Shown here piece after piece: positions 12,026 to 42,444 of a DNA stretch of 43,311 bases. The notes below the pieces were generated by a model, which worked only from the letters and a program-made list of their open reading frames with translations, was not told the origin of the DNA and searched no databases. A program made the translations under genes and the position numbers. This stretch comes from Octopus bimaculoides (taxonomy: Eukaryota). Within the stretch, counting starts at the first letter, position 1. Each line of letters opens with the position of its first letter. The DNA lies in the NCBI RefSeq assembly GCF_001194135.2, contig NC_068998.1, forward strand, positions 47,172,320-47,215,630, written 5' to 3'.

Positions 12026-12048
12026 NNNNNNNNNNNNNNNNNNNNNNN
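12026..12048. other. Assembly gap (N run); others at 17600-17706, 29985-30040, 35505-35682, 41682-41898
   Basis: N characters. Confidence 1.
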
Positions 12049-12957: not shown

Positions 12958-13100
12958 GTCTGGCCAGGGAGGAATATTACTTTTGCTTGGAAAGAGATGA
13001 GGGTTGGCAATAGAAGAGCATCCAGACATAGAAAATCTGCCTCAATAAACTCCGTCCAACCCATGAAAGCATGGAAAAGTGGACATTGAAAAATGATGAC
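12958..13100 (+). mobile_element. SINE-like family F (other copies: 1885-2100, 3405-3590, 5735-5905 and 11062-11192 on minus; 21555-21745 on plus)
   Basis: GGAATATTACTTTTGCTTGGAAA...GAGGGTTGGC..AGAAGAGCATCCAG...CCCATGAAAGCATGGAAAAGTGGACATT is found six times. Confidence 0.75.
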
Positions 13101-13200
13101 AATAAGTACAGGCCCGGCTGCACCCTGGATTTGATCTCACTGCATGACACATTGACCAAATATCTTCAACAACAGCCTTAGGTTGAGCAATCTGGTACAC

Positions 13201-13365
13201 GGTGCAGTTGTGGCTGTGTGGTAAGAAGCAAGCTTCCCAACCACATGGTTCCGGGTTCAGTCCTACTGTGTGGCACCTTGGGCAAGTGTCTTCTACTATA
13301 GCCTCAGGCCGACCAAAACCTTGAGAGTGGATTTGGTAGGCGGAAACTGAAAGAAGCCCATCGTA

Positions 13366-13403
<38 letters not shown>

Positions 13404-13700
13404 TGCATGCATGTATGTACGTATGTACGTACGTCTGTATGTATGTATGTATGTGTGTATGTATGTATGTATGTATGTGTGTGTGTTTTTGTGTCTGTGT
13501 TTGTTCCCCACCATCACTGCTTGACAACCGGTGTTGATGTGTTTATGTCCCCGTAACTTAGCAGTTCGGCAAAAGTGACCAATAGAACTAGGCTTTAAAA
13601 AAAAAAACAAGTCCTGGGCTCGATTAGTTCAAATAAAAACCCTTCAAGGTGATGCTCCAGCATGGCCGCAGTCAAATGACTGAAACGAGTGAAAGAATAA
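13201..13700 (+). mobile_element. SINE family A, full-length
   Basis: Same layout as 1401-1852 with an expanded internal (TA)n(ATGT)n tract. Confidence 0.9.
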
Positions 13701-17529: not shown

Positions 17530-18235
17530 CAAAGGATTCCCAAACCACCAGGTTGTGGACCAGTATCAAACCATGAATCATTTGGTACTGGGCGAAACAN
17601 NNNNNNNNNNNNNNNNNNNNNNNNNNNNNNNNNNNNNNNNNNNNNNNNNNNNNNNNNNNNNNNNNNNNNNNNNNNNNNNNNNNNNNNNNNNNNNNNNNNN
17701 NNNNNNAAAAAAAAAAAAAAAAAAAATTTTATTCCTGTTTTATTGACTTTTGACTATATAGGTGCAGGAGTGGCTGTGTGGTAAGTAGCTTGCTTACCAA
17801 CCACATGGTTCTGGGTTCAGTACCACTGCATGGCACCTTGGGCAAGTGTCTTTTACTATAGCCTCGGGCCGACCAAAGCCTTGTGAGTGGATTTGGTAGA
17901 CAGAAACTGAAAGAAGCCCGTCGTATATATGTATATATATATATGTGCATGTGTGCTTGTGTGTCTGTGTTTGTCCCCCCAACATCGCTTGACAATAAGT
18001 CCTGGGGTCGATTTCCTCGACTAAAGGCAGTACTCCAGCATGGCCGCAGTCAAATGACTGAAACAAGTAAAAGAGTAAAAGAGTATCACAGTCAGCAGAG
18101 TGTTTTTGTGTCAGATATACGTATTATATATGTAATAATAAAATTATATATATTAAGCATTTTATTATGCTTTGCTGTGGGAATACTGTCTTGCCCTAAA
18201 CTGGTCTGTGCTGCAAAACATGTTGGGGACTGCAG
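17530..18235 (+). mobile_element. hAT (Charlie/MER1-like) MITE split by an N gap and a SINE A insertion
   Basis: Left end CAAAGGATTCCCAAACC...GTGGACCAGTA and right end AAACTGGTCTGTGCTGCAAAACATGTTGGGGACTGCAG resemble MER1-type termini. Confidence 0.5.
17761..18082 (+). mobile_element. SINE family A, internally deleted
   Basis: Near-consensus head and tail; the segment between CGCTTGACAA and TAAGTCCTGGGG is missing. Confidence 0.9.
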
Positions 18236-18976: not shown

Positions 18977-19140
18977 GAGCAGATGTGGCTGTGTGTTAAG
19001 AAGTTTGCTTCTCAACCAGATGGTTCTGGGTTCAGTCTCACTGCTTGGCAGCTAAGGCAAATATCTTCTGCTACAACCTTCGGCTGTCCAAAGCCTTGTG
19101 AGCAAATTTGGTAGACAGAAACTGAAAGAAGCTTATCATA
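18977..19140 (+). mobile_element. SINE family A, 5' half, old
   Basis: Degenerate head and CORE-like region. Confidence 0.7.
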
Positions 19141-19899
19141 TATGTGTGTGTATGTGCATGTGTGTGTGTGCACATACACAGACACACACTTACATATGAT
19201 AGCTGGAGTAGCTAAAATGAATGGAAATGATAGATTCGGTTGGTACCAAGCTGTAAACTTATTTGCATAAGAGAGAGGTGTCCTCATAGGATCGGAATGT
19301 TTGACCAGATAAAGTTAGACATCTCTGGCTGAGGGTTACCAATTAATTCAGATGCTTTTTTGTTTATACATCAACCAAAAGAGGAATGCACATGGTCTCA
19401 GCAGGCCCTCGAAGACCGGTGATATCAATACTGTTTAAACAGCTGTGGTTTGATAGTTGGATTAAGAGAATGAGGGAAGTGTGTATCATATTTGCCAACA
19501 TGCAAGTTAATGTAGTATACAGTGTAAACATGGAGTGTATAGTATATCATAGAAACATGGTGTAAACATTCAAATGACGTCACTATCTTTCTAAATCCTG
19601 CAGCATTTCACAAGGAATTTTCTGTCCTTCCAGAAATTTGGGTCTGAAAAATTTGACTGGTATGCAAGAAAATATGGTAACTATTTGTTTTAGAGTATGG
19701 TAAATTTTAAAAAGTGAGAGCATGTATGGATGTTTCATCATTGTTATGAGTGTGTTACTTAACTGTTTAGCATTCAAACCGGCCATATCTCACTCAAATA
19801 TTCTAACTGTTTTCTGCTCAAAATGGCCTGATGTGGCCTCTCACACTTATCCAACAATGTCATTCTAAATTCTAAAAATAAACGATAGGCTCAACAAAT

Positions 19900-20953: not shown

Positions 20954-21510
20954 AGGCACGGGCATGGCTATGTGGGTAAGAAGCTTGCTTCTCAACCCTG
21001 TGGCTTTGGGTTCAGTCCCACCCTGTGACATCTTAGGCAAGCGTCTTCTACTATAAACCCTAGCTGATGAAAGCCTTGTGAGTAGATTTAGTGGACTGAA
21101 ATTGAAGCCTATTATATATGTATATATAGACACAGGCGTAGCTGTATGGTAAGAAGCTTGCTTCCCAACCACATGGTTCTGAGTTCAGTCCCACTGCGTG
21201 GCACCTTAGGCAAGTGATTTCTGCTATAGCCTTGGGCCTACCAAACCTTTGTGAGTGAATTTGGTAGACAGAAACTGAATGAAGTCTGACGTATGTGTGT
21301 GTTTGTTCCCCACCACCACTTGACAACCAGTGGTAGTATGTTTATGTCCCCATAACTTAGCAGTTCAGCAAAAGGGTCTGATGGAATAAGTACCAGGCTC
21401 AAAAAAACAAAAAATAAGTATTGGAGTCAATCTATTCAATTAAAAATTCTTCAAGGAGGTGCTCCAGCATGGCTGCAGTCTAATCATTGACATGAGTAAA
21501 AGGTAAAAGG
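20954..21510 (+). mobile_element. Two tandem SINE A copies (5' half at 20954-21115, full-length at 21133-21510)
   Basis: The head motif GGCTATGTGGGTAAG / GCTGTATGGTAAG occurs twice, about 180 bp apart. Confidence 0.85.
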
Positions 21511-24869: not shown

Positions 24870-25840
24870 CTATAGAAAGAAAGACACACATACACGGCCA
24901 TTTATGTTTAGCTGTATGTCAATACGAGTATATATATATATGATAGTAACATAGTAATGTGTACACAACTACATCAATATGTACTATCCCATACACGTAC
25001 AGACCATATAATACACACGCCTGTTTAGACATACACATATCTCTACCTGTGCTTATACATCTACATATTTATACATACATGGCATTGGTCGTTGTATATA
25101 CGTCCATTATTGCTGTATACAGCATTTCCAAAGCGAATAATACGTATATATATATATATATATATAGTCACTTACCTGTGTATATAGATGTGACACCATA
25201 GACTCAGAGTAATCCGACACTGCCATTTTGCCACCAAAATACAGGCAACGTCTCTCAAGCTTTTAATTTACGATATATAAATATATATATATATACAGAT
25301 ATATATATATATATACTTAAATATATATATGGTTAGTGTTTAGTGTGTAGTATATACATCCGCATGTGTGTGTGTATATATAGAAGTACTGTTTCTAGAG
25401 AGAGGGAGTGACTTTCTTCCTAAGCCCTCTCTTCTTCAATGATATGTACAAACAGATATACATGTGTGTACCTGTTGTAGCTGGGATGGATAGTGTGTGT
25501 GTGTGTGTGTATAAATATAATGTGTGTGTGTTTGTGTATATATGTATGTAAATATATATATATGTGTGTGTGTATATATATATATAATGTGTGTGTTTGT
25601 GTATATATGTGTGTATATATGTATGTGTGTATATATATATATGTGTGTGTGTATATACGTGTATGTGTGGTGGTATGTGAAGGTATATTATATATGTCTA
25701 TATGTATGTATGTCGGTTTGTGTATCTGTGTGTATGATAGCTGTCTAATTTGTGTATGTATGTGCGTATTATATCTGTGTATGTGTGTGTATGAGTGACT
25801 GTGCGTGTGTATTATGTGTGTGTATATATGTGTGTGTACT
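24150..25840. repeat. Compound microsatellite field (TA)n/(CA)n/(TG)n
   Basis: Directly visible. Similar fields occur at 460-660, 800-1145, 9380-9740, 12420-12560, 14070-14300, 27000-27260, 39500-39645 and 42825-43311. Confidence 0.95.
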
Positions 25841-29984: not shown

Positions 29985-30040
29985 NNNNNNNNNNNNNNNN
30001 NNNNNNNNNNNNNNNNNNNNNNNNNNNNNNNNNNNNNNNN

Positions 30041-31970: not shown

Positions 31971-32869
31971 CGAAATTTTTTCATATAATTCTTTAATTTT
32001 GTTGTATCTTGGGAGGGTCATTATATCAATAATAAACATACGCACTGGTTCTATTTCACTTCTTTATTATTATTTGTCAGTTAATTAGCTATTTAATCTA
32101 CTAACTAATTGATTGTTTGACTAATCATTCGGTTAAACAATCAATCAGTTATTTTTGTCAACGTCTTTTCGTTGCCATTCGCGATTTCTTCAATGACATA
32201 CCTGAAGCCTACCTGAAGTAGAGAGGGCATGTCATTCAAGAGGTCATGAATGGCAAAGAAAAGACTTTGACTAACGTAAGTGACTGAGGGATTAAACGAA
32301 TGATTAATCGAACAATCGATTAGCTAGACGGTTAAATAGCTAACCAACTAACAAATACTAAAGAAGTGAAATGCAGCCAGTGAATGTGTTTCTTATTGGC
32401 ACTAATTGTTGTTGTTGGCACTCTGTCGCTTACGACGTCGAGGGTTCCAGTTGATCCGATCAACGGAAGAGCCTGCTCGTGAAATTAACGTGCAAGTGGC
32501 TGAGCACTCCACAGACACGTGTACCCTTAACGTAGTTCTCGGGGGATATTCAGCGTGACACAGAGTGTGACAAGGCTGACCCCTTTGAATTACAGGTACA
32601 ACAGAAACAAGAAGTAAGAGTGGGAGAAAGTTGTGGTGGAAGAGTACAGCAGGGTTCGCCACCATCCCCTGCCGGAGCCTCGTGGAGCTTTAGGTGTTTC
32701 TGCTCAATAAACACTCACAACACCCGGTCTGGGAAACGAAACCGCGATCCTATGACCGCGAGTCCGCTGCCCTAACCACTGGGCCATTGCGCCTCTACAT
32801 TGGCACTAATACCCTCCCGAGGTAGAACAAAATCTGCTTCGATACAAGAGTTCACATTAAGAATTTCGC
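31971..32869. repeat. Long imperfect inverted repeat (fold-back), interrupted by SINE C
   Basis: Core arms 32043-32203 and 32225-32382 are about 79% complementary around a 21-nt spacer; complementarity resumes beyond the SINE. Confidence 0.85.
32407..32798 (-). mobile_element. SINE family C, full-length and young
   Basis: tRNA-like head (A box TGGCCCAGTGG, B box GGTTTCGTTTCC), 3' stem-loop CGTCG-TAAG-CGAC and (AAC)n tail. Perfect 12-bp TSD ATTGGCACTAAT at 32395-32406 and 32799-32810. Confidence 0.95.
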
Positions 32870-33405: not shown

Positions 33406-33484
33406 TATCCACCTCCCATCAAATTTCCCGTTTCTTTAGAAAAAAAAAATTTATTTGCCTTTAACAGAAAGGATTATTTCAGCG

Positions 33485-33705
33485 GGGTCGGAGCAATGAA
33501 CTTCTAATTGTTTGATCGTAGGACAAAAATGCCGTGTTCGTTTCTTACAGCTGTTTACGTTCTGGCTTCGAATTTTGCTGCGATCATCATTAATCTTTTC
33601 GGTGTCTGATAAAACATAGCAGTAATGAAATACAGACGTCGATGCTATTGACTAACTCGTCTCCTCAAAATTGCTGGCATTGCGCCTAAATAAATGATAA
33701 TAAAA
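33485..33705 (+). mobile_element. SINE family B-like, degenerate
   Basis: TTTACGTTCTGG...AATCTTTTCGGTGTCTGATAAAA...GTCGATGCTATTGACTAA...AAATTGCTGGCATTGCGCC. Confidence 0.6.
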
Positions 33706-33989
33706 AAAAGACCGCTTTTAATTCAGTATTAAACCGTTATTTATTCAATGAATCTGTTTTACCGGTAAAGTCATAATAAGCAGGAGTTGCCTCCCTTGCA
33801 TGATTAGAAAAAGCAGGTTTGTCTCAAAACCTTATTTTTCTACTAACATTCTTAATGCTTTTTCTCAAATTTCTTTCTTTCTTTTTTTTTTTTTACTTAA
33901 CTAGTTTCAGCTCGACAGCTGCGGCCATGATGGGGCACCACCGTTAGCCTTGCTACATTTTCACTACTTGTGAAACCTCCTCTGATAAT

Positions 33990-34260
33990 GTGGCATTTAG
34001 TGAATGAGGGAGTTTGATGTTGCTGCCCTCTTCCGCTTTTCTTGCCGCGAGGTAGGTTCATCCAGAACTCTTGACAGGAGGAGATCCAGTTTTCTTTCGA
34101 AGACGCCTACATCCACCACACGTAGATCTCCAGAGCTTTGTGGAAGGCTATTGAAGAGCTGTGAGCCTTTGAAATCCAAGCTGTTACAGTATCTATTCCT
34201 GTAAGCTGATAGCAATGTTAGGATTTTTGAGACCATGAAGTGGCGCCCCGTATTTAATAC
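33990..34260 (-). mobile_element. CR1/L2-group LINE 3' end fragment
   Basis: RNRYCNSLDFKGSQLFNSLPQSSGDLRVVDVGVFERKLDLLLSRVLDEPT matches the CR1/L2 ORF2 C-terminus pattern (xWNxLP...FKxxLDxxL). Confidence 0.75.
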
Positions 34261-34424
34261 TCCATATATGGAATATAAAATTTTATTTATCATAGCAATT
34301 TCAATTCTCCATACATTATATACCGGTCCGACATCGATTTTCTGGAATTTTTGGTTTCAAATCCTTTCTGGATTTGTTGATTTTTCGGAACCATAAATGG
34401 TCGCCTCTAAATTAAACAATTATT

Positions 34425-34635
34425 GGTTTCAAATTTTAGTACTAGGCCAGCAATTTCGGGTGAGTGGGTAAATCGATTACATAGATCCATTGTTTAACTA
34501 GTACTTATTTCATCGACCCTAAAAGGGATAAAAGAAAAAGTCGACCTCTTCAGAATTTGAACTCAAAACGTAAAGATAGACAAACTGCAGCTATGAGTTT
34601 TACCCAAAGTGCTAACGGTTCTGCCAGCTCACTGC
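34425..34635 (-). mobile_element. SINE family B
   Basis: Reverse complement of the core and head. Confidence 0.8.
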
Positions 34636-35192
34636 TTTGAAATAAATATTAAATTAACTTTAATTAAAGGAAATATAGGTACCTATACATTAGTGTAAAT
34701 GATACAAATGTATTAATACTGTTCTGTGTTAGGTACTAATCGGTGTAAGGTACCAGTAAACTAGTCTGGCGGCCGCAGGAACTTGAAGTTCCCGCGCGTA
34801 AATTACGCTTTGTAGGAACTTGTATGCCAAAGACTTGACCCAACGTTTCTTCTGCGTGTTGTAAAAAGCGATTAAAAGAGGTTGAGGTAGAAAATACTCA
34901 ACTTTCTCGTAAAACCCTCACCAGTAACGACTATCCAAACAGACCCCATGGGTTGGAGGGTTGTCACTCGAGTGGTGCAAAGGTGTCACCCACCAGGAGT
35001 AGGGCATCACCAATAAATGGTGGATGCAGCAACATGCTGCTACAGCGCATTATTCCATACTACTACTACTACTACTACACGTAAATTAGCAAGGATTATA
35101 AGAGGTTCCGAACCATCAGTGTCCGGGAAGTCGGTGTTGTACGTGCAAAGTAACCCTAACTTATTTTGGCTTTTTTTCTTTAAATAATCTCA

Positions 35193-35504
35193 GCATGGCT
35201 GTGTGGTAAGTAGCTTGCTTACCAACCACATGATTCTGGGTTCAGTTCCACTGCGTGACAACTAGGGCAAATGTCTTCTACTATTGCTTCGGGCCGACCA
35301 AAGCCTTGTGAGTGGATTTGGTAGACGGAAACTGAAAGAAGTCCGTCCTATATATATGTATATATATATATAGATGTATGTGTGTTTGTGTGTCTGTGTT
35401 TATCCCCCCACCATCGCTTGACAACCGATGCTAGTGTGTTTACGTCCCCGTAACTTAGCGGTTCGACAAAAAGAGACCGATAGAATAAGTACTAGGCCTA
35501 CAAA
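35193..35504 (+). mobile_element. SINE family A, truncated by an N gap
   Basis: Near-consensus head and middle. Confidence 0.9.
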
Positions 35505-36299
35505 NNNNNNNNNNNNNNNNNNNNNNNNNNNNNNNNNNNNNNNNNNNNNNNNNNNNNNNNNNNNNNNNNNNNNNNNNNNNNNNNNNNNNNNNNNNNNNNN
35601 NNNNNNNNNNNNNNNNNNNNNNNNNNNNNNNNNNNNNNNNNNNNNNNNNNNNNNNNNNNNNNNNNNNNNNNNNNNNNNNNNNAGTATTTATTTCATCGAC
35701 CCCGAAAGGATGAAAAACCAAATCAACCTCAGAGAATTTGAACTGCTAGGTATTTCGCGGTAACGATTCTGCTTTGTTCGTCGTCTGATCTTGTTAAAAT
35801 AATGGTGAGAGACCCACAAAAGCGCGTACATTTGTTGGCAACGAGAAGAAAAATCTTTGGACAAATCCGTTTCACCATTACAGTCTGTTGCGAAGATTGG
35901 TCCTTTACAGTCCACCTCATATTCTTTCAACTGAGTTTTCCACAGGCATTTGTAAACTTACCGAAATATTCAATCAGACCCAGTATAATTACTGGTGCAA
36001 TCCATCCTCTATGTTATTCACAGATATTTCTACTCTTAACGTTGAACTCGGCCAAATTCAAAAGGATACAGGGACAAAGTCAGTTCTTTGAGTTACAGGG
36101 ACAGAGTAGGGGAAGTTTTCGCACAGTGTCTGTCTCACGTTGTGGAATCATTGTGGCCGAGTATTCTAAATACATTAGTCCTCTTCTTCTTCATGGTAGT
36201 CTGTGGTAGTCGGAGAAAGACGATTCCGCAATTTCTTGCAGAACAACCTGCGCAAGAAATTCGTGACCAAATGTATGGGCTGTACATTAGCTCACTCAC

Positions 36300-36497
36300 T
36301 CACTCCCTCCATCAGATCGGCGTTACCTGAACAGGTGCACAGGTGTGTCACACGTCAGGTGTCGAAGTGATCGCAGGGCAACGTGAAATGAAGTGTTTTG
36401 TTCAAGAACACAAACTACTGTCCGGTTCGGGAATCGAAACCACGATCTCGCGATCGTGAGTACAACACCCCTAACCACTAGGCCACGATCCCTCACG
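36300..36497 (-). mobile_element. tRNA-derived SINE family I (related relics at 8705-8935 and 10385-10510)
   Basis: Minus strand TGGCCTAGTGGTTAG (A box) and GGTTTCGATTCC (B box), then GTGTTCTTGAACAAAACACTTCATTTCACGTTG, a V/Meta-type central-domain-like segment. Confidence 0.75.
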
Positions 36498-37760
36498 TAT
36501 CCACTGGCACCTTTAACTTAATATTCATGGATACTCTGTGTGACATAGTAGCAGAGGTAGAGACTTTTAAGCAAGTTTTCAGAAATGTTTCATCTGGTTG
36601 GGGTTGAAGTGAACCTACAGAAGGAGAAATTTCGTTAGGGGACTGCTCAGCTGTCCCCTACCGTGTTATAGATCATGTAAGATTGAACACAACAATAAGT
36701 CACTGATAATCACATCTCATCTCATATCTTCCTGCGGTAGAATGCACACTAACATGGGATAGTTTCCTCCACATTATGAACCTCTGTTAATGCATATGTG
36801 TCATACTTGTTTCATCAGCCATACTCTTCCGTGTCGGCGCAGGACAAGAGGGTATTAATTTTGGAACTTTCCTTCTCCTAGATTGATTGCTTTCACCGCA
36901 GCTAAGGGACTCAATCTACCTATGTAAAAAATCTATTTAATCCGTAGATGCGACCCTAACAAGTACTACCATTTCGGGTAGTAAGTACTGAATTGTTCAA
37001 AGTCAATCTCACGCAACTTGAACAGATACCCACTGATAGTGAGATCAAATCTAACAGTTGGCGATTGCGAAGCTTTTTTTTTGTTTGTTTTTGGTGATTC
37101 GAGAGTATACCCCCACCCCGCTTCCCCATCACCATCCAGCTCCACCATCCGTTACATTCTCACATTCACCTTGTAATCAAAATCAAAGCCCAAATCGAAA
37201 GGACTAAACAGGACCGACCCAATCGATGGACTCTGGTCTAAGTCTTGACATTGCCAGATGATTTCTTACCAATTTCGAACATCAAGGTAAGTTGAGGGGA
37301 TGTAGTGTTCAAAAGATTATTAGGGTCCAATGTGATAGGTCTACGTGATACAGTCCCCTATTGCAGACCCGTCTCTCAGCTGTTTACAAATTCTCATCCA
37401 AACACCTTTGGAGTGGAATAACTACTAATTGTATACGAACCCCTAACCTGGTGCTGTAACTGACTATTTCCCCAGACAACGAAAAATATCTACACTTAAA
37501 AAAAAAAAAAACGATAAAGGAATGCCACTGAGGGAGTCTTAATGAGGTCATTCGAATTGTTAGACATAGCAGCCGCATCGCATTCATAACATTTGATAAT
37601 TCAGTTAGACTATATATCGAAAAGAAAATTAGACATAGTTATCATGGTTGTAACATTTACTAACAAGCTTAGGCTGGCCTGGGGACAAACGACAATTGCG
37701 ATGATGATGACGACGATTAAAACACAAGGAAAATATTTAAAAATTCAATGAAAATTGATG

Positions 37761-38972
37761 CTATATTTTAAGGTTATATTTCCTATCATTCTGAACAATG
37801 CTATTCCACCTTTTCACGTTGCCTTTGTACACCATTTCTGCCACTCTCACCTTTTGTTTCCATTTCTCAATGAGTTCTCGCCACTCTTTATTGTCTTTTA
37901 CTAAAATAATATATTCCAATATGGACGGTACTCGGTAGTTCTCATAAAGCGCTTTCAATCTTTCGTTTTTAACCTTTTCATATTTTTCTCCTACTTCATC
38001 ATTTTGCTGTTTGTTTAATAGGTAGACCAAACTGTGGTTTTCTCGCAGAATTCTCTGACGAAATTCTTCACCTTGCTTCACGTCATTTTCTAGTTCTTGC
38101 TTTTTCTCGTAAGTGTATCTTTCAATGGGTACAAGAGCTCTTCTTAGACGGGATTTTTGTTTGTTAAGACTATGAATTTCTTCAATAAGTGTCTTTTTTT
38201 CCGTCCATTTGCTATAGAATTCAATAGGATCAACTTCGTCTCGATATTTTTTAATCATTATTTGTTTTTTAATTTTATTTACAAGACTAATATTTCGTAG
38301 TTTAATTAAACAAATTAGACTTTCCCGTTTTGTATCCTTCGTGGCGACGTATTTTTGCCATTTACGCAGAAAAGGAATTTTGCCATTCTCTTTAACCAAA
38401 ATACCGAATTCCATTTCCAGTTCTCGTCTCTCTAACGGAATTTCAGCTAAAGTCTCGTTGTAGTTTTCAAGCAAAGCAAGGTTCAAAGCGATAAAATGCT
38501 GTGATGTTTTTTTCGACAATTTTAATTCTTCTTTCAAAGCCATGATGTAATACCGAGCAACTAGTAGTTTCTGCTCTGTAGTCAAATTGCTTACTTTCCT
38601 AGCTACACCGATAATACCAGGGGCAAATGGTGCCGGTGATGGTGGCTGAGATTTTGCTACTGTCTGTGAACCAAAAACAGAACTTGATTCATTGCTAACA
38701 CCACTACCACTTGCATGCAACTTGTCTTCCAGATATTTCTCAAACATGCTCGTTTCAGTGGACAAAAACCGGTTCCGCTTTTCCGTTTCTTTCACCTTCT
38801 CAGAAAGATCTTCCATTGCCATAAAGCTAAGGGCTCCGATAAGCCACATACGCTTTCTCCTCGATTTTAATGACTGTAAATCTTCATGGCCTGCTTCTCC
38901 ACTGTCTATATCATTGAGATTAGAAGCCAATGCTGGGAAAATTGTTCTAATATTTGAAGGTAACTTCTTCAT
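37761..38972 (-). CDS. CCDC113: Coiled-coil domain-containing protein 113 (CFAP263)-like, single-exon, divergent
   Basis: 403-aa stop-free non-repetitive ORF, by far the longest real ORF. Collinear motifs match recalled human CCDC113: STETSMFEKY~KTETEMFEKY, LTTEQKLLV~LTADQKLEL, IKLRNISL~LRLKNVSL, ENYRVPSILEYI~AEFRAPQVMTYV, KWKQKVRVAEMVYKGNVKRW~MWERKVEIAEMSLKGHRKAW. The ATG has A at -3 and an in-frame stop 14 codons upstream. Confidence 0.85.
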   Translation of the reverse strand: MKKLPSNIRTIFPALASNLNDIDSGEAGHEDLQSLKSRRKRMWLIGALSFMAMEDLSEKVKETEKRNRFLSTETSMFEKYLEDKLHASGSGVSNESSSVFGSQTVAKSQPPSPAPFAPGIIGVARKVSNLTTEQKLLVARYYIMALKEELKLSKKTSQHFIALNLALLENYNETLAEIPLERRELEMEFGILVKENGKIPFLRKWQKYVATKDTKRESLICLIKLRNISLVNKIKKQIMIKKYRDEVDPIEFYSKWTEKKTLIEEIHSLNKQKSRLRRALVPIERYTYEKKQELENDVKQGEEFRQRILRENHSLVYLLNKQQNDEVGEKYEKVKNERLKALYENYRVPSILEYIILVKDNKEWRELIEKWKQKVRVAEMVYKGNVKRWNSIVQNDRKYNLKI

Positions 38973-39565
38973 TTTGCAACTTTTTATCCTTCCCTGGGAC
39001 CGTGAGGAGATTTACATGAACAACAAAGTCATGTACACTTGAAAGATAATCAGTGAAAAAAACTAACGAGGGAAACTTTGTGTTGACATTAGAAATGCTA
39101 AGTATAGCATCCAAACCTCCCTCAAATCACGCTCAAATATTTTCTCTCAAAGTTTACTATAGATGTTTATAACAATAAACGTTTAATATAAAAGTTTACT
39201 TGGGTTGTTTTCTGTAAAAATTCACAACAGGCGATTTCTTTAGGTGCTTACAATATGCTTTCTATATGTTTTCTATACATGTTTTCTGTAATATAACTTT
39301 TCTCTTTATATTTTCCGTACGTTTCCTGTCGATGCTCCATGTAGATGTAATGTGTTGATGTCAAGATAAAATGTGAAATATTGTATGTAGATGTTTTCAA
39401 ACTGTATTATTCAAATACTTAACGCTTTCCTTAAAGCAACGCAGGACATTCATTCACTACCTCTTTCCTGTCTATCTCCTTCACTCATTCGTTCTATTGT
39501 ATGAGCGCGCGCGTGCACACACACACGCACACACACATTTGCGATTGAGTGTGTGTATGTACATA

Positions 39566-39643: not shown

Positions 39644-41170
39644 CATGGTGTTCGGGCTAAATTTGGCAATTTTCATGTCTCCTTTTTATCAGGAAGATCT
39701 TGATATATATGGTGAACAATCAGCGGTGTTGGAGAGCAAAAAAGATTAAATTGTAACTGGAAAAAAAACTTAGCTGACATGGAGGACTGGAAGCCATCTG
39801 AATATTGGAAAAGAGTTACCTGCACCATGATGATTCGCGCTGGGTATCGAAATGCTGACATTTTGACTGCTGCTCAATGCTTTGTGAACACTGTAAGGGG
39901 TGTAAGACGTGACATGGACAGCTGCGAAGGACACTGTGAAGCTGTGGCCAACAATAAGGACACAGCAAATTTTCTGACTGCGTCCGCACTCCGGTTTTCG
40001 TTCAACAACTGCAGGACAAGGTGGTGGCAGATCCGAGCAAAGGAATCTGGGTTTTGGCGAGAGAGACGGTTAGCCCTGAAGCTAACCCTGAATGAAGACC
40101 TTCGCTACGACTCATACAAGAAGCGCAAGTGACAAACTCTGACGACCAAACTCTGAGAACTGCTTGGCGATGATAAGGAAACTCCTGTTCAAGCTGAGGC
40201 AACCTGTTGAGCCTGGTTCTACTCAGATGAAAAGAACTTCTGTCAGCACCAGTTGCAAAACACCCAGAACGAGAGGTGACTTGCCTACCATCCATGTGAT
40301 GTCCCACGTATTAAGAAAACCAAGTGGAGGCGCAATGGCCCAGTGGTTAGGGCAGCGGACTCGCGGTCATAGGATCGCAGTTTCAATTCCCAGACCGGGC
40401 GTTGTGAGTGTTTATTGAGCGAAAACACCTAAAGCTCCACGAAGCTCCGGCAGGGGATGGTGGCGAACCCTGCTGTACTCTTCCACCACAACTTTCTCTC
40501 ACTCTTACTTCCTGTTTCTGTTGTGCCTGTAATTCAAAGGGTCAGCCTTGTCACACTCTGTGTCACGCTGAATCTCCCCGAGAACTACGTTAAGGGTACA
40601 CGTGTCTGTGGAGTGCTCAGCCACTTGCACGCTAATTTCACGAGCAGGCTCTTCCGTTGATCGGATCAACTGGAACCCTCGACGTCGTAAGCGACGGAGT
40701 GCCAACAACATATGAAAACCAAGGTCTCCAACTTGTGATGGTTTTCGGGTGTGTCTCTGCCCAACCCCTTATCTTTGAACAGGGCCTAAGCCGCAGTTCA
40801 GACGGCTAAGTGAATCTGCTGGAGACAACAGTCAAACCATGGCTGGAAATGGTTGCTGCTGGAAGGCCATATAAATGACAGCCGGATTCGGCTCCTGGAA
40901 GGAGTCAGAAGCAGTTGTCAGAGAGATTTTCTACCACGACTTCACCAGCCCCAATTTCTGGCCTCTTAGTTCCTTCGATTATAACCCCACGTATTAAGTA
41001 TGTGTGGGGGCGCGGTTGAGAAAGATGCTAACCGTTCTGCATGGAACACCAAGGCCGAGAGCCGGCGGCCTAAAATCAAGGAGGTGTTCGAAGATCACAG
41101 GGGCGCGCGCGCCAGGTTCCGGCGCCGCTTTCAGTCGTCGTTGTGGAAGCTGAGAGCGGGTACTTTGAAC
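39644..41170 (+). mobile_element. Decayed Tc1/mariner transposon, maT/DD37D-like, interrupted by a SINE
   Basis: TA then CATGGTGTTCGGGCTAAA at the left end, ATG at 39779. Frameshifted or stopped transposase motifs: FYSDEKNF (D1), LQNTQNER*LAY, MKTK..VMVFGCVS, QPDSAP (D2), FWPLSSFDYNP (~WPPNSPDxNP, D3), WGAVEKDANR, RFRRR..VVEAESGYFE. No right TIR found. Confidence 0.85.
40325..40710 (+). mobile_element. SINE family C, full-length and young, inside the maT relic
   Basis: About 95% identical to the reverse complement of 32407-32798 (about 16 differences by eye). TSD A(A/T)GAAAACCAAG at 40313-40324 and 40712-40723. Confidence 0.95.
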
Positions 41171-41660: not shown

Positions 41661-42444
41661 TACGCCGCCGCCCGCCCACCGNNNNNNNNNNNNNNNNNNN
41701 NNNNNNNNNNNNNNNNNNNNNNNNNNNNNNNNNNNNNNNNNNNNNNNNNNNNNNNNNNNNNNNNNNNNNNNNNNNNNNNNNNNNNNNNNNNNNNNNNNNN
41801 NNNNNNNNNNNNNNNNNNNNNNNNNNNNNNNNNNNNNNNNNNNNNNNNNNNNNNNNNNNNNNNNNNNNNNNNNNNNNNNNNNNNNNNNNNNNNNNNNNGG
41901 CTAGAGGACTAATGCTAATCCTGAGTCAGTGCCAATCTATTTTACTCACAGAACCGACCATAGATTCCGGAAAGCAATTTGCAAGAGAGATAACTGTCGG
42001 TATTAGTAAGAGTTGCCTCCCATCAAAAATATTTCTGTTTATATCCGCTAGGATAACCAAACCAACTGACTTCCTTTTATTATCATTTTGATACCTTTCA
42101 TGTGTATTTTCAGAAATAAGGTCGTTGATAGAAAGAAGGAGCAATCTAAATTGCTGCTGATTGATTTTGGTTGAAAGTAGCCGCCTCATTTTAGCACAAA
42201 CTGACCAGTAAAGCCAACTACATCTCACTCACATTATAAACTCAGGATGATGGAGAAAACATATTATGAATGCAACTTTAAACGGAGAAGTCACATTTCG
42301 AATCCGTTTGACTTTACGTCTATCCCATTACAATTGATCCAATGTAACATGTTAAATTTCTTTTAACCATTTGAAGTTTCTCAAATTTTCACCTGAATAT
42401 TAAAAAAAAAATGAAATTTGGTTGTAGTTTTGTAGTCTGATTGA

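Follow-up and report, generated by a model that had tools for sequence, protein, structure and literature searches.

We identified a complete, intron-free protein-coding gene in a 43,311-nucleotide stretch of Octopus bimaculoides DNA (hereafter the window, to which all coordinates refer), which is 100% identical to chromosome CM046618.1 at about 47.2 Mb. The gene is a 403-codon open reading frame (ORF) of 1212 base pairs that runs from ATG to stop on the minus strand (37761..38972), and its product is a highly divergent homologue of the axonemal coiled-coil protein CFAP263, also named CCDC113. The existence of the gene and its family label are already known from annotation, as RefSeq calls it CCDC113 and UniProt lists a DUF4201 protein. 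We consider it probable that the ORF is one copy, here termed A, of the coleoid CFAP263 gene, and that this gene arose by an ancient retrogene replacement, has since undergone sustained fast evolution, was duplicated in octopods and still encodes an axonemal linker. In the literature on CCDC113 retrogenes and on octopus or cephalopod retrogenes we found no earlier description of this case; that is, we found no published account of the intron-free status, the extreme divergence, the apparent absence of a conventional copy, the changed synteny or the octopod head-to-head duplication of the coleoid gene.

The stop-free frame surrounding the ORF spans 416 codons (37764..39011). Other stop-free frames in the window have at most 174 codons, and the longest of them are microsatellite or SINE-like (short interspersed nuclear element-like) translations. 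With a stop-trinucleotide frequency of 0.0515 in the window, about 2.4e-5 frames of 416-codon length are expected by chance. The surroundings of the ORF are rich in repeats, with microsatellites, recurring SINE-like units and five assembly gaps, in agreement with the initial annotation, which had pointed to an intact ORF in decayed repeat DNA and to purifying selection or a recent origin. The gene is indeed functional and under purifying selection. The Nei-Gojobori ratio of nonsynonymous to synonymous substitution rates (dN/dS) is 0.217 between O. bimaculoides and O. vulgaris, and 0.228 and 0.196 for each of these against a third octopod, at synonymous distances (dS) of 0.18-0.39 across the three pairs. 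Between O. bimaculoides and O. vulgaris the coding sequence is 93.6% identical and the aligned non-coding flanks 83%.

Several methods place the ORF product in the CFAP263/CCDC113 family. A phmmer search matched human CCDC113 (8j07_i2) with E 6e-12 in an alignment of residues 59-392 with residues 29-362 of 377, and a profile of coleoid sequences detected CFAP263/CCDC113 among solved structures at E 1.5e-21. Comparison by hhalign with a profile of 13 conventional CFAP263 proteins gave 99.6% probability and E 7e-25 over 335 collinear columns. The significant matches in the PDB are all CCDC113/CFAP263 chains of axonemes from human (8j07 i2), bovine sperm (9fqr Om), Chlamydomonas (8glv F4) and Tetrahymena (8tek T), and every named relative from an exhaustive sequence search is likewise CCDC113/CFAP263.

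A conserved Pfam domain, PF13870 (CCDC113_CCDC96_CC, formerly DUF4201), had been suggested as a check on this assignment. In a Pfam scan the window protein did not match PF13870 even at E ≤ 1, nor was the domain matched at E ≤ 0.1 by the coleoid protein P0002, by the second O. bimaculoides copy, B (P0004), or by the protein of the cuttlefish Sepia (P0006). Control proteins from oyster, fish, shark and protists scored 96-157 bits (1e-27 to 1e-46). Because profile methods align the proteins over their full length, we attribute the missing match to lineage-wide divergence and not to a lack of homology.

The collinear alignment preserves the N-terminal motifs ETxMFEKYL and LTxEQK, a central LRN, and the C-terminal motifs YRVP and W.(Q/R)KV.(V/I)AEM...W. 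The initial annotation had described a highly divergent CCDC113 homologue with its terminal motifs intact, and both parts of that description hold. The AlphaFold2 model is all-helical, with helices at residues 53-89, 132-196, 201-246, 249-345 and 351-401, a mean predicted local distance difference test score (pLDDT) of 72.7 and a predicted template modelling score (pTM) of 0.27. When the PDB was searched with the model by Foldseek, nothing matched at E ≤ 0.001, as is expected for an extended coiled-coil monomer with so low a pTM; this result is uninformative and was not used.

The coleoid gene evolves faster than the family norm. The window protein is about 25% identical to oyster CCDC113, while the oyster protein shares 71-75% identity with those of chiton (71%), abalone and scallop, 62% with Nematostella, 57-58% with placozoan and sponge (58%), and 40% with a protist. 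Within coleoids, the window protein is 91% identical to its counterparts in O. vulgaris and O. sinensis, 85% to that of the third octopod, 55% to the B copy and 32% to Sepia pharaonis. The A copies of Argonauta and Octopus are 58% identical, compared with 74-75% for oyster and scallop. In a neighbour-joining tree of all taxa, which was used for coleoid clade support and branch lengths only, the coleoid sequences (Octopus A and B, the third octopod, two Argonauta copies and Sepia) form a clade with 100% bootstrap support. The stem of this clade measures 1.28 substitutions per site; conventional root-to-tip distances are about 1.1-1.5, and the stem is longer than the root-to-tip path of most conventional sequences.

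The same divergence is evident at individual residues. The window protein keeps 51 of 142 near-invariant family positions. When near-invariance is defined on 18 conventional animal sequences (146 positions), coleoids keep about 35%, and 75 positions are changed in all coleoid proteins. Octopus A, Octopus B and Sepia also have 39 invariant residues in common that are essentially absent from conventional proteins.

Conventional CCDC113 genes are interrupted by introns. Abalone CCDC113 has seven coding introns (codon/phase 36/2, 138/0, 190/0, 217/0, 269/0, 305/0 and 357/0), the scallop gene has seven with the same phases and spacing, and the chiton gene is also multi-exon. In Nematostella there are nine exon gaps, eight of which were mapped exactly, and five match mollusc introns in both position and phase; the CCDC113 introns are thus ancestral. 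The coleoid ORF, by comparison, is a single genomic block at seven loci, namely O. bimaculoides A and B, O. vulgaris, the third octopod, Argonauta A and B, and Sepia pharaonis, and the intron-free divergent form is also found in O. sinensis. Since octopods, Argonauta and Sepia pharaonis share this form, it predates the split between octopus and cuttlefish. The absence of all introns at once suggests an RNA-mediated origin. Because conventional mollusc genes have seven coding introns, the intron-free state is derived; it is also old, and fits the retroposition envisaged in the initial annotation.

No poly(A) tract or target-site duplication is visible at the 3' flank of the ORF, as had already been remarked, and no such hallmarks are expected to survive from an event that predates the split of cuttlefish and octopus. 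At 37072-37093 on the minus strand, about 690 nucleotides past the stop codon, there is a short A-rich tract, CCAAAAACAAACAAAAAAAAAGC. Given the age of the gene, this tract most likely belongs to a repeat rather than being a remnant of retroposition.

We found no conventional, intron-bearing parent among annotated cephalopod proteins. The searched collection includes proteins of O. bimaculoides, O. sinensis, O. vulgaris, Sepia pharaonis and Argonauta. An exhaustive HMMER search of the window protein against 1.8 billion sequences returned 20 representatives, and those from cephalopods are all of the divergent type. When oyster CCDC113 was used as the query, the best 120 of 860 relatives (down to 49% identity, the query and one fragment apart) contained no cephalopod sequence. 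These 120 all carry PF13870 and cover bivalves, gastropods, chiton, annelids, brachiopods, nemerteans, deuterostomes, cnidarians, sponges, placozoans and a ctenophore; of the mollusc classes sampled, the cephalopods alone are not represented among them. A word-indexed search with the coleoid profile gave no further members from squid, Nautilus or other cephalopods. Among the O. bimaculoides proteins retrieved, the RefSeq name CCDC113 is attached to two adjacent divergent genes only. Because no conventional cephalopod copy is among the matches listed, we regard the divergent intron-free gene as probably the coleoid CFAP263 itself and not an extra copy. The earlier proposal of a retroposed paralogue of a surviving multi-exon CCDC113 is thus not supported: the divergent form is present in octopods and Sepia alike, and the nearest paralogue of A, the B copy, is itself intron-free.

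The coleoid gene also has different neighbours. In scallop and chiton, CCDC113 and the gene for CK2-alpha lie head to head about 5 kb apart (L012 1-5255; L013 1-4915), and in human chromosome 16 CSNK2A2 and CCDC113 are adjacent (PMC11245064). This arrangement looks like an ancient bilaterian gene pair, possibly with a shared bidirectional promoter. We found no CK2-alpha exon within about 10-17 kb on each side of the Octopus, Argonauta and Sepia copies. Instead, the upstream, divergently oriented neighbour in Sepia is an intron-free gene encoding a zf-CCHC zinc-knuckle protein, the Octopus orthologue of which is found beyond the B copy (64% identity over 98 amino acids, E 5e-43). The gene order is therefore zinc-knuckle gene (leftward) and CFAP263 (rightward) in Sepia, and zinc-knuckle gene (leftward), B (leftward) and A (rightward) in Octopus. 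Comparisons of the coleoid loci with the extended octopus region by tblastx were swamped by low-complexity matches, and the zinc-knuckle signal, which was verified separately, is the only one retained. No zinc-knuckle gene was seen near the conventional CCDC113 genes. With a zf-CCHC neighbour where chiton, scallop and human have CK2-alpha, insertion at a new site is a better explanation than loss of the introns in place.

The zinc-knuckle gene is a single ORF located at window-equivalent positions 53554-56093 in Octopus (L001 18649-21188) and at L009 2470-4398 in Sepia. Its product has five or six CNBP-like CCHC knuckles, in a region that is 64% identical between the two species, followed by a long Ser/Thr/acidic tail with lineage-specific tandem repeats. 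As an intron-free gene, it may be another old retrogene.

The B copy encodes 395 amino acids, is 55% identical to A and lies about 5.9 kb upstream of A in head-to-head orientation, just beyond the end of the window (window-equivalent 44906-46093). As both copies are intron-free and sit so close together head to head, the pair is best explained by a local DNA duplication. In Argonauta an A/B pair is likewise present head to head, with both ORFs intact. In an alignment restricted to coleoids, from which octopod relationships were taken, Argonauta A groups with Octopus A to the exclusion of O. bimaculoides B with 80% bootstrap support. Together, the shared pair and this grouping indicate that the inverted duplication predates the split of Argonauta and Octopus; dS between A and B is 1.15. 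In Sepia pharaonis, the 10 kb to each side of the gene contain no second copy. No B copy was found within 10 kb upstream of A in O. vulgaris, where colinearity with O. bimaculoides ends about 6.6 kb upstream of A, and the annotations of O. vulgaris and O. sinensis do not contain one either. As O. bimaculoides and Argonauta retain B, its loss or displacement in the O. vulgaris group is possible.

A further CCDC113-like sequence occurs in Argonauta hians on a separate contig (BAAFZT010000065.1). There, a 1087-residue model (P0008; L010 5001-8798) fuses a truncated, very divergent CCDC113-like segment (equivalent to residues 54-285) to dozens of tandem repeats of the 'SHGIDKKIS' type. This model represents either a dispersed third member of the family or a decaying copy.

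These observations would be accounted for by the following history. A processed CFAP263 copy would have inserted beside the zinc-knuckle gene, away from CK2-alpha, before Decapodiformes and Octopodiformes diverged. The intron-free copy would then have taken over the function, with loss of the intron-bearing parent, and the replacement gene would have evolved at several times the rate usual for the family, with an altered pattern of constraint. An inverted duplication in the octopod stem would have given rise to the A and B copies.

In Tetrahymena, Ccdc113 and Ccdc96 form a mutually dependent complex, which connects the base of radial spoke 3 (RS3) both with dynein g and with the N-DRC (nexin-dynein regulatory complex; PMC7987202). 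Mouse CCDC113 binds CFAP57, CFAP91 and DRC2 and is required for the sperm axoneme and for head-tail coupling (PMC11643634). In other organisms, CFAP263 pairs with CFAP184/CCDC96 at the RS3 base and connects the spoke to the N-DRC, the inner dynein g and the doublet microtubule. The coleoid protein probably remains such a linker, with a remodelled central coiled coil, and its most plausible sites are sperm flagella and other motile cilia, since the architecture and terminal anchor motifs are kept and no alternative cephalopod candidate was found. A more far-reaching and rather doubtful suggestion is that coleoids exchanged one of the most conserved axonemal linkers for a retrogene and remodelled it under a new regime of constraint. 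According to this idea, the retrogene with its new VDPxEFYxK kink in the central coiled coil would presumably have co-evolved with CFAP184/CCDC96 and with the RS3/N-DRC interface, the head-to-head octopod paralogues would split the job (for example between the sperm flagellum and somatic cilia), and the 96-nm axonemal repeat would have been re-engineered in this lineage, with sperm competition as a possible driver.

Several other explanations deserve consideration. A chance frame or decaying pseudogene might be suspected from the repeats and gaps around the ORF and from its lack of a Pfam match. However, this explanation is ruled out for practical purposes by the chance expectation given above, by dN/dS near 0.2 in three pairs and by conserved intact ORFs at seven loci in five or more species. 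It is also unlikely that the octopus copies are extra, fast-evolving and possibly testis-specific retrocopies of a conventional multi-exon CCDC113 gene that persists elsewhere in the genome and does the housekeeping work in the axoneme. An intron-free coding sequence that is extremely divergent within a conserved family is the pattern typical of testis retrogenes, the search for a parent covered annotated proteins only, and the Argonauta P0008 model shows that further dispersed copies can arise. Yet the best 120 of 860 oyster relatives contain no conventional cephalopod CCDC113 although the proteins of five cephalopods are in the collection, of the retrieved O. bimaculoides proteins only those of the adjacent divergent pair bear the RefSeq name, and cuttlefish carries the same divergent intron-free gene at a syntenic locus.

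In another alternative, all seven introns were lost in place, for instance by recombination with the gene's own cDNA, and the CK2-alpha neighbourhood was broken later by rearrangement, with neither retroposition to a new site nor replacement. In-place loss would equally explain a single intron-free lineage that has no parent, agrees with the lack of surviving retroposition hallmarks and with the heavy rearrangement reported for coleoid genomes. We nevertheless judge it improbable. The approximately 5-kb head-to-head pairing with CK2-alpha in chiton and scallop, and the adjacency in human, give way to a different gene in Sepia and Octopus, and complete loss of seven introns in one step is rarer than retroposition. 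A different kind of alternative concerns function: the helical scaffold may have been kept while the RS3-base role was lost in favour of a new non-axonemal role or one limited to sperm head-tail coupling, which the new invariant motif and the two octopod paralogues would reflect. About 65% of near-invariant positions are changed, the 39 new invariant residues include a proline-containing block in the central coiled coil beside a 4-residue deletion, the Pfam domain is undetectable, and in mammals CCDC113 is already known to act a second time, at the head-tail coupling apparatus (PMC11643634). Such neofunctionalisation is quite unlikely, however, as the end-to-end collinear alignment retains both the N- and C-terminal anchors and no other cephalopod candidate for the axonemal role is among the matches listed.

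Several points weigh against replacement by a retrogene that kept its axonemal role. The RNA-mediated mechanism is deduced solely from the simultaneous absence of all introns. The absence of a parent is read from annotated cephalopod proteomes only, and a moderately diverged copy less than 49% identical to the oyster protein would rank below the best 120 of 860 relatives. Rearrangement of coleoid genomes could equally explain the lost CK2-alpha neighbourhood, of which about 10-17 kb per side was inspected. The tree does not unite the B copies of Octopus and Argonauta (8% bootstrap), so that their orthology is assigned by position. Finally, with some 65% of the near-invariant residues lost and a proline in the central coiled coil, the function could have changed.

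The initial annotation had described the ORF as a single exon, and it is uninterrupted in the genome. However, the two O. bimaculoides RefSeq isoforms, X1 (380 amino acids, XP_014768696.1) and X2 (376 amino acids, XP_052830337.1), both leave the ORF by splicing after codon 374. The internal donor is AAG/GTGAGA, with the wider context AAACAAAAG/GTGAGA (the slash marks the splice site), and splicing in X1 and X2 removes the conserved C-terminal motif. The O. vulgaris counterpart of the X1 terminal exon is in the opposite orientation to the gene, and the exon is apparently species-specific. The annotation of O. sinensis and O. vulgaris gives the 403-residue read-through protein. On these two grounds, the read-through protein is probably the conserved product, and the C-terminally truncated isoforms may be a species-specific side product. 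The segment that holds the X1 terminal exon, approximately 33462-35190, has opposite orientations in the assemblies of O. bimaculoides and O. vulgaris, with the assembly gap at 35505-35682 as its boundary on one side and the repeat at 32410-32803 near its other side; the inversion is either real or an artefact of scaffolding.

Coordinates of the gene, its parts and other features are collected in the table. The C-terminal 29 codons align in the profile-profile comparison to the conventional '...KVEIAEMALKTHRKTW', and the motif they hold is kept in O. vulgaris, O. sinensis, the third octopod, O. bimaculoides B, both Argonauta copies and Sepia. In the central part of the protein, Octopus A, Octopus B and Sepia all have V247, D248, P249, E251, Y253 and K255, none of which occurs in the 18 conventional sequences, and the long helix of the AlphaFold2 model breaks at residues 247-248. 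Among coleoids, constraint on the protein is strongest at residues 203-303 (dN/dS 0.048). The central changes (DPIEFYSKW), which had been taken as non-conservative, thus lie in a segment with dN/dS of about 0.05 and belong to a motif also present in Sepia.

Residues 90-126 of the linker have pLDDT below 50 and align to the variable basic/Ser-rich linker of conventional proteins. Relative to conventional CFAP263, the N-terminal extension comprises approximately 30 residues; homology starts at about residue 40-59. Residues 1-101 have dN/dS of 0.16, and an N-terminal element, K(R/L)MW..(G/S)A(L/V)S, is common to the window protein, O. bimaculoides B and Sepia, with L35, K40 and W43 invariant in coleoids.

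Table. Features of the window (43,311 nucleotides) at and around the coleoid CFAP263/CCDC113 A copy.
Feature	Position	Strand	Basis or remark
Coleoid CFAP263/CCDC113 A copy, complete intron-free coding sequence (403 amino acids plus stop)	37761..38972	minus	ORF list, homology, dN/dS
N-terminal ~50 residues ahead of the region alignable to conventional proteins	38820..38972	minus	coding, constrained
Ser/Pro/Gly-rich linker, residues 90-131	38580..38705	minus	predicted disordered
VDPIEFYSK motif, residues 247-255	38208..38234	minus	coleoid-specific, invariant; beside a deletion of four residues compared with conventional CFAP263; predicted helix break
Last 29 codons plus stop, VRVAEMVYKGNVKRWNSIVQNDRKYNLKI (then stop)	37761..37850	minus	hold the conserved C-terminal motif of the family
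First coding exon of X1/X2, codons 1-374	37851..38972	minus	isoforms equal the ORF for 374 residues, then diverge
4165-nucleotide annotated intron of X1, beginning inside the ancestral ORF	33686..37850	minus	GT 37850-37849, AG 33687-33686; annotated gene range ends at 33665
X1 alternative terminal coding exon, 21 nucleotides, AQCQQF then stop	33665..33685	minus	preceded by polypyrimidine tract and AG
Five N runs (assembly gaps)	12026-12048, 17600-17706, 29985-30040, 35505-35682, 41682-41898		
SINE-like unit copies	1411-1581, 13045-13542, 17771-17995, 19015-19314, 21063-21341, 35196-35424, others	both orientations	

The window contains several further features. The SINE-like unit is present in many copies that are 84-91% identical to one another and lie in both orientations. 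A GC-rich interspersed repeat of about 390 base pairs occurs as an inverted pair (32410-32803 and 40320-40710; 95.7% identical) that brackets the A gene together with its alternative 3' exon, and a third, partial copy is found just 3' of paralogue B (L001 12189-12362). One of the five assembly gaps falls in the 5.9-kb spacer between the A and B genes. A gene for an 1852-residue product, with no Pfam match on record, is annotated on the minus strand from position 25226 or lower (L002 23747 onward) toward the left end of the window.

CFAP263/CCDC113 is a deeply conserved hub of motile cilia, the loss of which causes beat defects in Tetrahymena and male infertility in mouse and human. If the proposed history is correct, the coleoid gene would be a clean and datable retrogene replacement in a lophotrochozoan. 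It would also serve as a natural experiment to show which residues are truly indispensable to the RS3-base linker, as approximately 31 near-invariant positions survive in all coleoid copies, and it would flag cephalopod sperm and cilia for a possibly different construction of the 96-nm repeat. Annotation based on PF13870 would call CFAP263 missing in cephalopods, which would be a false 'gene loss'.

Compared with conventional CFAP263/CCDC113, the coleoid protein is of about equal length and collinear from end to end, and its model has a helical architecture with a disordered Ser-rich linker at the matching place. In contrast, it lacks a PF13870 match, its gene lacks the seven introns and the CK2-alpha neighbour, and it has a new VDPxEFYxK block, a 4-residue deletion, an N-terminal extension and two octopod copies. 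The other family to be compared is CCDC96/CFAP184, the sister family and binding partner of CCDC113, which like CCDC113 is a coiled coil, shares PF13870 and is part of the same axonemal complex (PMC7987202). However, in the PDB, which includes whole-axoneme entries, no CCDC96/CFAP184 chain was matched at E ≤ 1 by the window protein or by the coleoid profile.

Two known retrogene systems are similar in other respects. Amphioxus SYCP1 is a retrogene replacement, or 'orphan retrogene' (PMC5803294). Like coleoid CFAP263, it has a single-exon coding sequence in place of a gene with several exons in relatives, no detectable parent and a new neighbourhood, and has been kept under selection. The coleoid event differs in being much older, in its extreme and sustained rate acceleration and in the local inverted duplication, and the loss of its parent is read from annotated proteomes only. 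The cephalopod genes SP6-9b and SP6-9c are tandem intronless paralogues that have been attributed to early cephalopod retrotransposition (PMC7661307). In that case the intron-containing parent, SP6-9a, is kept nearby, whereas no such parent was found for CFAP263, and the SP6-9 copies are in tandem whereas the octopod CFAP263 copies are inverted. In both systems, the genes are intron-free, cephalopod-wide and clustered, and their synteny is conserved.

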